A stretch of DNA of 64,000 nucleotides from Glycera tridactyla (taxonomy: Eukaryota), in NCBI GenBank assembly GCA_965644265.1, contig OZ286474.1, positions 12,524,001 to 12,588,000 on the forward strand, in the 5' to 3' direction. Below, one piece after another: positions 1,868 through 44,692 of the stretch. The number at the start of each line of letters is the position of its first letter. Position 1 is the stretch's first letter. The notes beneath the pieces are model-generated. The model saw only the letters and a list, made by a program, of their open reading frames with translations. It ran no database searches and had not been told where the DNA came from. The position numbers were made by a program, and so were the translations under genes.

Positions 1868-4800
1868 TGATCACAACAAGCCACGACAGGTGTGCACCTG
1901 GGGATGTGCTGAAGATCACAACACCAGCATCTGGCAACATTGCAAGTATGACTACAAGAGAGACTGGATGTGGTGGAGAATCCAGTCCATGGCTCATAGA
2001 GGCTCCTATTGGACAACAAATGAAGCTCACTTTGCTAGACTTTGCAGACCCTGGTATCAGTGACCAGTCATCCATATGTCTCATGTATGCCAAAATCAGG
2101 GTAAGTATGAGGCTTCATAAAAGCTTCATGAATATTTTATCGCTTGAAGTGTATCTGGGATACATCTGCCCTTCACATATTGGAATTTCAGAACACAGCA
2201 AACATCCATGGCATAGTGTAAACATTGTGTAATATGCAATAATATTTCTGATACGATGTTCATATACGAGAGTTGACACACTGGTTAGCGAGATTCATAG
2301 GGATGACAAGCATACATTTGGTACAGGATTCGATTGATATTCAACGAACGTCTTTTTGTGACTACACGATGCAGAAATTGACAAATTATTTTGTTTCAGG
2401 TTTGTACGGCAACTATTAACTATAATGTGAAATCCGTGGCATTCATTCTCTTTTCTTAAAGACATGGACACTTCAAGAACATAGTTGAACTAATTGGTAA
2501 CATATGGTCACGAGATGAAGGATAGATACCATCTTTCTTTGATGTTGTTTCAATTTTTACTCATGTAGTGCCAGTTGTGGAGAAAAGTTTCCTTAGATTT
2601 GATGTCTATTTCAGGACCTGAAATCTGGACAGCAAAGTACAGTGTGTGGTGCTCAAGGCAGGCAGCGCTTGGTTTACGAATCTATTGGTAACCAAGTTGA
2701 AGTACAAGTCATCAGCAGGGGAGAGAACAGGCATTTTTTGCTGCAATATAAATGTAAGTTACTGTTCGAACAATTTTCATTTATTCAGGTACTGTAGTTC
2801 ACCTCATCGAATGCTTGCTGATATTCTGTCATTCGCATGTACCAATCGTTATTAAGTTCCATATCAGATAGACCGAAACTGATTTGTGAGATGATAGTAT
2901 TTAAAATTGGTTTCAGCAGGGATATCCTGCATTGAATTTTCAGAGAGCATTCTACCTGCAAGAGGGCAGAATATTCCTTCATGTAGTTTACCCCCATATT
3001 CATTTTCTTTCATCGTATTTCATCTGCACTAAGATTCATATAATCCAATGAATAATCTTGCCGAAGTGAATTTACCAATCAACCGATCAGACAATATGCT
3101 ACACCTGTCATTGACACGGTATCTTATACTTTGAGGACGAGAGAATAATCAAGAGGGTATTGTTTTCTTTCATCAGTTGTAGGTTGTAGTGAATTTACCA
3201 ATCAACCGATCAGACAATATGCTACACCTGTCATTGACACGGTATCTTATACTTTGAGGACGAGAGAATAATCAAGAGAGTATTGTTTTCTTTCATCAGT
3301 TGTAGGTTGTAAGGCCATGGAGCCAATAGATGGACACGAATTGATCCATGAAACCAACAGAACTACGGTGAAATGCATGAATGATGGCGACCGATCAACC
3401 TATCACTGTGATGGCACATCCTGGATAGGAGTCATGCCGAACTGTAGCGTTGTGGATGAGGAACCTGAAGTGGAAAATGGCCGAGAAATCACTCAGACAG
3501 ATGGTGAATACACTTTGTGAATATTTGCTCAAATATGCGCCATACTTCCGTCGAGTTTGTTGTAGTGTGGTGTATTGTAGTGTAGTGTGGGGTAGTGCAG
3601 TGTATTGTGTGTAGTGTAGTGTAGTCTAGAACAGTGTAGTGTAGTGTAGTGCAGTGCAGCGTCATGCCGTATAGTGTATCATAGAGCATTACTGTGCAGT
3701 GAAGTATGGTGTAGTGTATTGTAGTGTAGTGAAGAGTAGTGGTATGTCGTGTAGTGTAATGTAGTTCAGAGTAGTTTAGTGTAGTGTAGTATAGTGTAGT
3801 ATAGTGTAGTGTAGAGTAGTGTAGTTCAGTGCAATACAGTGCAACACAATGTAGTTCAGTCACATCCTGTGTATTAAGGTACAGCATAGATTACTCTAGT
3901 GTATAACTTTACTCATCACAGCATGTAGGTCATGATCGTCTCCTAATATCACAAACAATATACTCACGAGTTTGGGGAATTCGCAGTGACGAGTCTGATC
4001 CTGAAGAGATATATGCTTTTTTCGTGATTGACAGCCAATCGCGATCTGTTGTGATGATGTTTCGTTACTTGCAGATGAGAAACCACCAGTTGTCAAGAAA
4101 GTTGTCAATGCTGAGCGGGAACCTGAACTCATCCAAGAGGACAACGCTGCTGTGGATTTCTCTACAATAACATGGGGTCGGTACTTCACATACCTTTCCA
4201 TTCAGGAGTCATGGTGCAGTTCATATTGATCGTTTTAAACAATGAACATATCTCGACTAATATCTGGATTCCCATGAAATGATGGATCATGCTCTTCGCT
4301 CAGAGCAAGTGAAGAAATTATCATTCAGATGAGATGTTGTGATAATACTCACTGAAGGATCCATGTGGATCTTATGGCCTCTTTATCTACATACCCAATC
4401 ACCCTAGAAATTTTCCAGATGGTACAGTCATACAATGTCAATATACAGCCCGCATGATCACAGGTCATCTCATGATAAATGCTCCCAAACTCATTTTGCC
4501 CTCTGCAGCTTTTATATTTGCGCAGCGGGTATGTTGCATGATTAATTTCATCCCTGTATTTCAGGCATGGTTCTCATCCTGGTGGGCATAGTGACAGCTG
4601 GCCTGGTAGCATGTGTACTGATCATTAGTTGTGTCTATTTGAAGAGGTGAGTAATCCTGACAATCCCGAATACTTACAAGGTTTTCTGATGTCACATGCA
4701 ATCAAAGATTAACCTACCATTGGCTGCAATTTCAGGTCCGTGGTATCTTGTAATGCCCGATTTTTACACTGGAATAGGGGTATCATGGCCACATATTTAA

Positions 4801-5576
4801 CTGAATTGATCACAGTAGTGCAGTACAGATGAAATGTCATTGATTTCCGCTATTTAGTGATTGTAATTATGTACGGCACTAACAAGCTTTTCATCATTGT
4901 CATTACTGATCATTTGGAAAAGAAGAAGAATACATTCCGAAAGCTACTATTGCAGTGATCTAGCCTCCGTTAGCATGTGACATGAATCTTGTTCAACTAT
5001 AATGGTGAATGAAGGGTTTCTCATATGAGAAAAGAAGAGGTGGGTTCAAACAATTATTGATTCGCCATAAGCACCATTGGTATTGTATGCTATGCGATAT
5101 ATAATCACATCATCGATTTCTATAAGCTGATTGATGGATTGACTGATAAATTGACTTATGAATTGACTGAGCGACAGACTGACTGAATTGTATGTATCTT
5201 CAACCATCGCAGGGTGGTTCGAGACTGAAGTGATGGACCAGATCTCCCAGAACCATCTTGTGTGCGAAAAAACATTCACTCATTCAATCAAAGTATATCA
5301 TCCATGTTATATGCTCATAGTTCTTTTTTGCTTTGCCACAGGAAATCGCATGAAGGTCATGCTCCCATCATCGTACCAGCTCCACCATCTGATGTCGGCT
5401 ATGAGACCTGTGACTTTGACTTCTCCCAGAGGACAAGCACCATCTTCCATGATGGGTTCCGCACTATGCCCAAGATGTACACACCAATCAACACTGGTGG
5501 ACGGTGTGGAGGGGATGACAAGACATGGGACCGGCCACTACCACCAGAACCACTCGTGACACCATGCAATGTCTGA
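1868..5576 (+). CDS. Lectin-CUB-Sushi type I membrane receptor, copy 1 (tail class A; signal and lectin exons not in window)
   Basis: GT-AG exons 1868-2100 (CUB a), 2615-2753 (CUB b), 3300-3503 (Sushi-like), 4075-4176 (stalk), 4565-4646 (TM GMVLILVGIVTAGLVACVLIISCVYLKR), 5342-5576 (tail to TGA). Phases join into one open frame; sizes match the paralogs. Confidence 0.9.
3066..3311 (+). repeat. 123-bp tandem duplication spanning the Sushi-exon splice acceptor of copy 1
   Basis: Units 3066-3188 and 3189-3311 differ at one base; both end TTTTCTTTCATCAG|TTGTAGGTTGTA. Confidence 0.95.
3563..3860. repeat. Degenerate (AGTGT)n pentanucleotide microsatellite in the Sushi-stalk intron of copy 1
   Basis: Runs of gtagtgtagt; the same motif sits in the same intron of copy 2 (13711-13800). 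Confidence 0.9.
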
Positions 5577-6567
5577 GATTGATCAACCTGAGTCAGGTGT
5601 CCCTGCTATCTGCATATGGGATATATTGGGACTTTCAGAGGATGAGTACTCAATCGTATGAGAAATATATGTGGCACAGAACTATATTGAATTAGTCTTA
5701 GCCTGGTGATGAAACTTGGACATTAATGTGAGCACCAAGTTGTCCAACTGACAAGTACAGACCAACCTGTCTTAATCATGCGGCCAAGGGAAGACATAAA
5801 AGTGTGTGCTTGGAGCAGGTGTATGGTCAGTACAGAGAATAAAACACTCAGGTGGAATGACCCTAGCAGAGAAGCTCGAAAAGGATTTTGCTCAGTACAG
5901 AGCATTCTTAGAGCAGGTTAATAGTTACATGATCTCCCCAAATCTATCGTATCGTTGTTTGCATCATACGGATGCTTGGAAGTACAGGAGATTTGACATG
6001 TCATTTCTTAAGGTGAAGTTGCAAAATCCTGTCAATCAATTATGTTCAATACTATGATATAAATCATCCTCTCGCAATTGTTACTGTCAACAACGACAAA
6101 AGAGGAGGTGGAAAATTCAATCGCAGGCAGAGGGTGGATCAGAACCTTCAGGCTCTGACAGTGGTACTGGACTGAGTTCAGTCAAAACATTCAAACAAAC
6201 TAACAGACCATCATGTTCAGTTTTATGAATCTTTATTCATGTAAGCAGTTGACAAAGTCGTACAGAACAGCTTCAATGGACAAGTAAATAATGATGACAT
6301 ACATACAATAACCTTCGGGTCAAACTCTGAGTACACAGTGAATACAGGTGACACTACTCTTTGAGCGCGAGAATTTGCATGAGAATACTCGTAGCAGTAA
6401 GTTGTGCTGCCTATAGAGGTAATTGAGATACTATGGTACAGTATATCCTCTCTTGGTCATATACAACTATAATTCGATTCTCCGGCCTCCATGTCTGTTT
6501 CCCAAGCAGACTCGATATTTAAAGAGACCTTATAGTTTACTTCCCCTTAACATCTGGATACTTTCCC

Positions 6568-44259: not shown

Positions 44260-44305
<46 letters not shown>

Positions 44306-44692
44306 CTGATTGTATTTTTCTATGATTCACTGATTGGCTGAATGCCTGATTGGTCGACTGACTGACTAACTAACTGACTCACCTAGTTGCTCACTCACTG
44401 ACAAGATGATTGAATGAATGAATGAATCACTGATCTGAACATTCCCCTTTGTTGCAGGAAATCTCATGTGCAGCGAGCACCAGTCTTTCTACCAGGGCCA
44501 CCATCAGACACAGCCTATGAGACATGTGACTTTGAGATCTCACACAGAGCAAGCACCCTCTACAGGGACAGATACCGCACTGTACCAAAGATGTACGCAC
44601 CCCTCAACAAAGAAGCAGGACCTCCCTTCTCAGAGTATGCCTGGGACAGGCCTCTACCACCAGAACCTCTCGTTGCACCATGCAATGTCTGA
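37934..44692 (+). pseudogene. SUEL lectin-CUB-Sushi receptor, copy 5 (tail class B); +1 frameshift in CUB exon b as sequenced (candidate pseudogene, null allele or base-call error)
   Basis: Exons 37934-38006, 38383-38524, 39089-39240, 39814-40046, 40857-40996 (140 nt versus 139 in all paralogs), 41783-41992, 42457-42558, 43752-43833, 44458-44692. An extra A at about 40904-40908 gives TAA at 40932-40934; all other exons are intact. Confidence 0.75.
39267..39621. repeat. (TAG)n/(GAA)n simple repeats in the lectin-CUB intron of copy 5
   Basis: Perfect agtagt runs at 39267-39330 and 39563-39621, the latter adjoining a gap. Confidence 0.9.

Follow-up and report, generated by a model that had tools for sequence, protein, structure and literature searches.

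EVA-1 of Caenorhabditis elegans and EVA1C of vertebrates, type I membrane proteins with a SUEL-based ectodomain, are protein-binding guidance co-receptors, and in the latrophilins (ADGRL) a SUEL domain, called Lec, forms the membrane-distal head. A CUB domain followed directly by a Sushi or complement control protein (CCP) module is the arrangement seen in C1r, C1s, MASP, MAP-1, SEZ6 and CSMD. The full-length relatives of the genes described here are annelid proteins: hypothetical 'SUEL-type lectin domain-containing' proteins of Capitella teleta and Paralvinella (P0062, P0071, P0152-P0154) and an entry of the nr database from Arenicola marina, 'Gal-binding and CUB domains containing receptor 15' (P0157). 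The SUEL or rhamnose-binding lectin (RBL) domain itself spans about 100 amino acids, has eight conserved cysteines forming four disulfides and bears the hallmark motifs YGR, DPC and KYL (PMC10817417); the role of lophotrochozoan SUEL lectins has been termed 'elusive' (PMC8878817), and only three have been reported in Aplysia (PMC9334734). Here we analyse a window of 64,000 nucleotides of the Glycera tridactyla genome (contig OZ286474.1, hereafter C40, positions 12,524,001-12,588,000; the assembly searched comprises 2.04 Gb), which contains five co-oriented plus-strand genes. We consider it probable that they are the last five of about 70 tandem genes encoding type I single-pass SUEL-CUB-CCP receptors of about 455 amino acids, with a common transmembrane (TM) helix and tail and under purifying selection.

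A six-frame motif scan and splice-aware models resolved each of the five genes into nine coding exons, and the near-identical exon sizes and phases given in the preliminary description of this DNA were recovered together with all of its motifs, which lie on the plus strand. The signal peptide, read as cleavable, is encoded by exon 1 (73 nt: ATG, 24 codons and one further nucleotide, ending in a phase-1 donor), the SUEL domain by exon 2 (lecA, first half; 133-142 nt, 142 in the window genes) and exon 3 (lecB, second half; 149-155 nt, 152 in the window genes), and the CUB domain by exon 4 (CUBa, first part; 233 or 236 nt, 233 in the window genes) and exon 5 (CUBb, second part; 139 nt). These are followed by the Sushi module with a linker (exon 6; 198-213 nt, 204-210 in the window genes), an acidic stalk (exon 7; 102-108 nt, 102 in the window genes), the TM helix (exon 8; 82 nt) and a tail of 77 amino acids (exon 9; 235 nt, stop included), the exon ends lying in phases 1, 2, 1, 0, 1, 1, 1 and 2 before the stop. 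The motif CGGESSPW occurs once per gene on the plus strand (at 1969, 12415, 21483, 30494 and 39915), all five genes contain QSSICLMY, and all five contain YETCDF, RPLPPEP and PCNV followed by the stop, with tails ending at 5576, 15592, 25181, 35079 and 44692. The segment given in the preliminary description runs from the first base of the CUBa exon of gene 1 (1868) to the stop of gene 5 (44692), and the lectin loops at 9947, 20554, 29361 and 38469 belong to genes 2-5. Genes 1-4 have open frames of 454-455 amino acids.

A genome search with the tail exon gave 69 matches, all on C40 between 11,544,317 and 12,568,689 at a spacing of about 10 kb (66 plus, 3 minus); the five window genes therefore lie at the 3' end of a tandem series of about 70 that extends over 1.02 Mb. 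The five genes of the preliminary description are all present, but the array to which they belong is far larger, the lectin exons of gene 1 lie outside the window and gene 5 is frameshifted. The CUBa exon gave at least 150 matches genome-wide, about 70 of which fall within the main array (hand count from the match table), and hand counts of additional CUBa arrays on C40 gave 18 minus-strand copies at 12.59-12.98 Mb, 8 near 34.0 Mb and 17 at 79.1-79.4 Mb; CUBa copies are also scattered outside the C40 arrays, and the lecB exon has 83 genome matches. Exon-level annotation covered 21 units, those of the window and of 200 kb upstream, and statements on the whole array are drawn from the match tables. 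Intact frames of 446-456 amino acids were found in 17 of the 21 annotated units, the other four being one truncated unit, one with a TAG in the tail, one whose stop could be an artefact of the model, and gene 5. A signal-peptide exon with a good donor is present in most units. Since every unit bearing a tail exon has its own stop and every window gene its own start codon, we regard the units as separate genes and not as alternative exons; both the autonomy of each unit and the SUEL-CUB-Sushi-TM layout first proposed for them are upheld. Within the main array, three units have minus-strand orientation (C40 12,003,589-12,046,462, tail and CUBa matches), which suggests a small inversion of about 40 kb.

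The domain assignments are based on Pfam scans, profile searches and folding of single exons and on scans and models of full-length relatives; the joined models served only for frame bookkeeping, for a tree from concatenated per-exon alignments and for one local blastp of gene 3 against the relatives. The two SUEL half-exons, scanned separately, match positions 2-24 (13.0 bits) and 39-80 (21.9 bits) of the PF02140 profile, a rough sum of 34.9 against a gathering cut-off of 31.4, full-length relatives scoring 35-45 bits. Together lecA and lecB encode about 96 amino acids, with the eight cysteines in 17 of 18 intact units and the YGR motif, as (Y/F)(Y/F)GR, likewise in 17 of 18. The Pro-Cys of DPC is mostly retained and its Asp occurs in only 2 of the 18 units, and the Lys of KYL is found in none of the 18, being replaced by S, H, Q, N or D. 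Judged from these residues, the SUEL fold may persist while sugar binding is doubtful. For the CUB domain, a CUBa profile of 20 sequences gave 1,294 matches in 1.84 billion proteins and finds the canonical multi-CUB proteins P0007 (E 3.6e-26), P0011 (E 8.9e-18) and P0130 (E 6.5e-10); the top match of the deep search, P0001 (5,486 amino acids, 68 matching stretches), was discarded as an unrelated bacterial repeat protein. The same profile is in register with positions 5-47 of Pfam CUB (PF00431; E 1.9e-4, probability 47%), the CUB of the relative P0135 scores 23.7 bits, above the cut-off of 21.4, and the four invariant cysteines, which with a beta-sandwich fold characterise the CUB domain, are distributed as three in CUBa and one in CUBb. 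A CCP module has about 60 amino acids with four cysteines and an invariant Trp; its pattern C…C…C…W-G…P-N-C varies little or not at all, and the model of the gene 3 Sushi exon, built from the paralog alignment, is a four-strand module (predicted local confidence, pLDDT, 84-92 over residues 1-50) whose Foldseek/VIA matches are nearly all CCP, with modest Z values of up to 4.4 and a root-mean-square deviation (rmsd) of 2.4-2.9 Å over 50-59 residues. The PF00084 cut-off of 20.7 bits was not reached, gene 3 giving no match at E up to 1, and the Sushi profile run against PDB sequences returned spurious antibody matches only; as modelled, the exon is a divergent CCP-like module. The full-length relative P0129, 29% identical to gene 3 by the local blastp, gave a confident ectodomain model that matches the latrophilin, SUL-I and CSL3 lectins as well as the CUB-CCP units of MAP-1, MASP and C1s, and its CUB matches those of MASP, C1s, Neto2, neuropilin and TSG-6. 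Each gene has a single TM helix of 26 residues, followed by a tail with the motifs GYETCDF, IYRDGYRTVPKMY, WDRPLPPEP and the PCNV end; Pfam scans of the single stalk, TM and tail exons gave nothing.

The array is most similar to the proteins of Arenicola, Capitella and Paralvinella, likewise lophotrochozoan, in which a signal peptide, one SUEL, a CUB and a Sushi-like module, as in the array, precede a single TM helix and a tail. Exon-wise blastp against P0157, P0129, P0152, P0153, P0062, P0071, P0097 and P0024 showed each ectodomain exon of genes 3 and 4 to be collinear with the annelid relatives at 24-48% identity, and found no match for the stalk, TM and tail exons, P0157 included. The preliminary description recognised no named receptor with this layout; that statement has to be withdrawn for the ectodomain, with which the Arenicola receptor is collinear, although the tail is not shared. 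The annelid tails are about 150-250 amino acids long and carry NDYYRTWQ, HIYESPxF and YFELD, whereas the array tail has 77 amino acids and ends in PCNV. The tails of P0157, P0062, P0097, P0153 and P0024 share NDYYRTWQ, HIYESP(K/N/Q)F and YFELD, a tail type absent from the array, and the YESP-type tyrosine motif could be a candidate SH2 docking site. A 13-residue W-D/E-x-PLPxEP motif is common to the array tail and Capitella P0071 only; homology of the tails was rejected beyond this motif. We read the genes by ectodomain as members of a lophotrochozoan family known only from database names, and by tail and scale as a separate subfamily with a very large expansion. The literature searched contained no paper from which the Arenicola name stems or that describes an expansion of SUEL receptors in molluscs, nor any report of a tandem array of about 70 genes for the annelid family, and word-limited searches returned annelid proteins and short SUEL fragments, with no annotated full-length mollusc member.

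Among the better characterised systems the similarity is limited to parts. In EVA-1 and EVA1C a pair of SUEL domains is combined with a FAM176-type TM and cytoplasmic region, and neither CUB nor CCP occurs, whereas the array genes have one SUEL with CUB and CCP; FAM176 (PF14851) gave no match on the window exons and 12.6 bits in the relative P0129. The latrophilin Lec domain is the best structural match of the family SUEL, as modelled in P0129 (8djg_F, 6vhh_B and 2jx9: TMt 0.68-0.81, rmsd 2.4-2.6 Å), but latrophilins are adhesion G-protein-coupled receptors with olfactomedin, HormR, GAIN and seven TM helices, where the array genes have a single one. The P0129 model also matches MAP-1 (E 3e-7) and the CUB2-CCP1 of C1s; unlike the C1r/C1s/MASP/MAP-1, SEZ6 and CSMD proteins, the array genes are without EGF, protease or a series of CUB or Sushi domains and have an added lectin head, so the similarity is at domain level only. 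The clustered protocadherins are comparable in organisation only: there too, many recognition-type surface protein units of one orientation form a very large array, and a conserved promoter-proximal element belongs to each of them; their variable exons splice to shared constant exons, whereas each array unit has its own TM, tail and stop, and the folds are unrelated.

The divergence gradient between head and chassis announced in the preliminary description is real: at the amino-acid level the five genes have identities of about 0.6 in SUEL, 0.8 in CUB, 0.37 in the stalk, 0.90 in the TM helix and 0.72 in the tail. That description placed the variability in lectin loops and stalks; the signal peptide, stalk and post-Sushi linker are the most variable parts, not the lectin loops alone. 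Nonsynonymous divergence (dN) and its ratio to synonymous divergence (ω), estimated by the Nei-Gojobori method on the nine closest pairs, were 0.51 and 0.27 for the signal peptide, 0.18 and 0.11 for SUEL, 0.09 and 0.10 for CUB, 0.20 and 0.15 for Sushi with linker, 0.29 and 0.21 for the stalk, 0.02 and 0.04 for the TM helix, and 0.04 and 0.08 for the tail. Every domain is under purifying selection (ω 0.04-0.27), and no domain-level sign of positive selection was seen in any of them with these pairs. Compared with TM and tail, divergence is 2-10 times faster in heads, stalks and signal peptides. The lectin and CUB ratios are uniformly low, the outcome named beforehand as speaking against diversified heads, and 'diversified' here is a matter of old conserved paralogs with faster-drifting heads. 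The TM helix (MVLILVGIVTAGLVACVLIISCVYLK; exon at 24304-24385, for example), with 89-94% identity, is the most conserved part of the protein. That it exceeds even the tail is not what a simple membrane anchor usually shows, and suggests either a specific partner within the membrane or gene conversion at the level of the exon. Between neighbouring genes the exons align by blastn and the introns do not, which speaks against a chance resemblance; as introns can no longer be aligned and synonymous divergence (dS) is about 1 or higher, the paralogs are old. Trees of the head, of CUB with Sushi and of TM with tail give the same clades, which reflect position along the chromosome (unit 16 groups with genes 1-3, and genes 4 and 5 group together). 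This agreement indicates that heads have not been exchanged between chassis. The array has grown long ago by local tandem and block duplication and has been kept by purifying selection.

Several points weigh against the reading of the locus as an array of functional SUEL-CUB-CCP receptors. Pfam calls neither CUB nor Sushi on single exons, the CUBa profile has no match among PDB sequences, and the CUB and the complete SUEL fold are seen structurally only in P0129, the 29% identical relative. The residue at position -2 from the C-terminus varies (C, H, R or S), and short motifs, which can arise by chance, are the basis for the proposed ligand type and signalling. The dS values are 0.55-0.61 in the TM and tail exons, 0.94 in CUB and 1.73 in SUEL, and the low values at the 3' end suggest that exon-limited gene conversion, and not selection alone, may account for part of the 'conserved chassis'; they alternatively hint at nucleotide-level constraint. 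Box 1 of the upstream module described below is not unique to the array, having 202 loose matches genome-wide. Splicing, expression and the head-to-body join of gene 1 over 19.6 kb are predictions. Finally, gene 5 is frameshifted as assembled: an alignment of the five CUBb exons places one extra nucleotide, relative to genes 1-4, in or beside the A-run at 40901-40908 (…GGGACGAAAAAC… in gene 5 against …GGGA-AGAAAAC… in gene 4), the frame from the conserved acceptor at 40857 meets a stop at about 40932-40934, and it stays open only via an alternative acceptor. The extra base is either a pseudogene frameshift or a homopolymer error in a region of poor assembly.

If the array genes are receptors of this kind, the membrane-distal SUEL head would bind ligand and the stalk would set how the head is presented. 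The loss of the Asp of DPC and of the Lys of KYL makes a protein or glycoprotein a more likely ligand than free rhamnose or galactose. The CUB-CCP pair may act as a conserved platform, as in C1s and MASP, and through the near-invariant TM helix and tail all paralogs would feed into a single intracellular pathway. Candidates for this in the tail are the tyrosine motifs (GYETCDF, IYRDGY and KMY), a putative SH3-type site of the form RxxPxxP (RPLPPEP) and the C-terminal x-N-V.

It can also be hypothesised, as a doubtful alternative, that the genes encode glycan-sensing immune pattern-recognition receptors, whose SUEL heads bind microbial rhamnose or galactose glycans, and that the array diversified under pathogen pressure. 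Large lectin expansions are common in molluscs, and the heads of the array diverge about twice as fast as CUB. SUEL/RBL lectins bind rhamnose, galactose and lipopolysaccharide in fish, echinoderms and a bivalve (PMC10817417, PMC8878817), but the sugar-associated Asp and Lys are the very residues retained in 2 and in none of the 18 intact units of the array. The SUEL ω of about 0.1, the lack of domain-level positive selection and the ancient, individually conserved paralogs argue likewise against diversification of the heads by pathogens.

Three conserved boxes are found 60-150 nt before the ATG in most units, genes 2-5 included, even though the introns of these units cannot be aligned. The module lies on the plus strand at 9140-9225 in gene 2, 60-140 nt before the ATG, with boxes related to ATGGGTGCATTATGGAG, ATATTGATGTC and TGTCGGCAGTG; at 19596-19681 in gene 3, where boxes 1 and 3 are exact; at 28094-28170 in gene 4; and at 37785-37865 in gene 5. 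We read it as a putative shared promoter or 5' untranslated element. A conserved upstream open reading frame was rejected as its cause, the upstream ATG being missing in 6 of 17 aligned units and the length of the frame varying. The idea that box 1 is array-specific is only partly true: exact copies are enriched in the arrays, which contain 3 of the 9 in the genome, and loose matches are widespread. As another proposal, the genes could be protein-binding adhesion or guidance receptors conferring cell-surface identity, possibly with one or few genes used per cell; the head would act like that of latrophilin on teneurin (through Lec) or of EVA-1 on Slit, and the upstream module would support promoter choice. 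We regard this proposal as unlikely, even though the nearest SUEL structures are latrophilin Lec domains in teneurin or TOL-1 complexes (TMt 0.71-0.81), the sugar-associated residues are degenerate, the array has a protocadherin-like scale, and the old paralogs have each been conserved and each have a conserved module near the promoter. It is weakened by the lack of shared constant exons of the kind found in the clustered protocadherins and by the upstream motif, which was not array-specific in the loose genome scan.

That the units are alternative cassettes of one complex locus, joined by cis- or trans-splicing or in read-through transcripts, would fit their common orientation, their spacing of about 10 kb and their identical exon phases, which allow exons of different units to be joined in frame; we hold it to be very improbable, because most units have their own ATG, signal exon and upstream module, every tail-exon unit has its own stop, and the head and tail trees agree, with no sign of exchange between units. 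It is scarcely credible that the units are mostly dead or artefactual repeats, whether pseudogene remnants or an assembly over-expansion of few genes, for although 4 of 21 units have stops or truncation under the models and gene 5 is frameshifted among assembly gaps, 17 of the 21 frames are intact, exons are conserved where introns cannot be aligned, ω is far below 1, and copies differing by 5-60% in protein cannot be collapsed or duplicated reads of one gene.

The individual gene models, all on the plus strand, are as follows. Gene 1 is represented in the window by its six 3' exons (1868-5576): CUBa 1868-2100, CUBb 2615-2753, Sushi with linker 3300-3503, stalk 4075-4176, TM 4565-4646 and tail 5342-5576. 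Its signal, lecA and lecB exons are located at C40 12,504,261-12,506,280, beyond the 19.6 kb intron, and with them it has an intact frame of 454 amino acids under the predicted join. Gene 2 is complete (9277-15592), with canonical GT/AG splice sites and an intact 454-amino-acid frame: signal 9277-9349, lecA 9861-10002, lecB 11093-11244, CUBa 12314-12546, CUBb 12764-12902, Sushi 13418-13621, stalk 13844-13945, TM 14527-14608 and tail 15358-15592. Gene 3 (19736-25181), also complete, is the reference model: signal 19736-19808, lecA 20468-20609, lecB 21046-21197, CUBa 21382-21614, CUBb 22114-22252, Sushi 22951-23154, stalk 23685-23786, TM 24304-24385 and tail 24947-25181. The complete gene 4 (28233-35079; 455 amino acids, intact) comprises signal 28233-28305, lecA 29275-29416, lecB 29901-30052, CUBa 30393-30625, CUBb 31107-31245, Sushi 32834-33040, stalk 33517-33618, TM 34248-34329 and tail 34845-35079. 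For gene 5 (37934-44692) the exons are signal 37934-38006, lecA 38383-38524, lecB 39089-39240, CUBa 39814-40046, CUBb 40857-40996 (140 nt), Sushi 41783-41992, stalk 42457-42558, TM 43752-43833 and tail 44458-44692. The assembly gaps at 7703-7856 and 16394-16703 are intergenic, and those at 38550-38948, 39622-39750 and 44000-44213 fall in introns 2, 3 and 8 of gene 5, whose intron lengths are estimates; as no exon or splice site overlaps N, the frames are independent of continuity across the five gaps.

The introns contain some further elements. The 19.6 kb intron of gene 1 includes an open reading frame (ORF) of 238 amino acids on the minus strand (1073-1789) with no Pfam match, which by eye resembles the reverse transcriptase of a non-LTR retrotransposon in its C-terminal part (…FKYLGIYLD…). 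Simple repeats at 14040-14160 and 3490-3890 are present in introns of genes 1 and 2: a (GT/CA)n microsatellite and a tract with long 'HYTTL'-type ORFs. In unit 11 the intron after lecB contains a minisatellite with 11 or more tandem copies of 66-68 nt each (C40 about 12,443,630-12,444,440); its repeat unit is derived from residues 29-50 of lecB, the 3' third of that exon. Downstream of gene 5, about 13 kb of the window (45,000-58,000) are without any family exon or Pfam-recognisable ORF and form the zone in which the plus- and minus-strand arrays converge. A divergent paralog, convergent with the main array, occupies the minus strand at 58249-64000: CUBa from 63968 onward, beyond the window end, CUBb at about 62155-62283, a Sushi ORF at 61219-61503 (12.3 bits), a TM exon at about 59459-59540 and a probable proline-rich tail ORF at 58249-58710. 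It is the first gene of the minus-strand array that reaches about 12.98 Mb. A second tail family for that array was rejected, the candidate tail ORF being found once in the genome.

On one chromosome of this species there are at least 110 genes for SUEL-CUB receptors, and a near-invariant TM and tail are common to about 70 of these, which places them among the largest surface-receptor families of the animal, in a family that appears undescribed in the literature searched. Should their expression prove ordinary, the array would be a routine lineage-specific expansion. It is a quite improbable idea that more than 100 SUEL-CUB-CCP receptors, those of the array of about 70 genes with its common tail together with those of the neighbouring arrays, each with its own promoter module and expressed as one or few per cell, label cell surfaces in combination and so specify the identity of neurons or other cells, or self against non-self; if true, this would be a lectin-based, non-cadherin and non-Ig analogue of the clustered protocadherins or of allorecognition loci. 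The shared promoter module makes coordinated and exclusive expression distinguishable by experiment, and the many natural head variants on one chassis offer a tractable system for studying binding by SUEL receptors.

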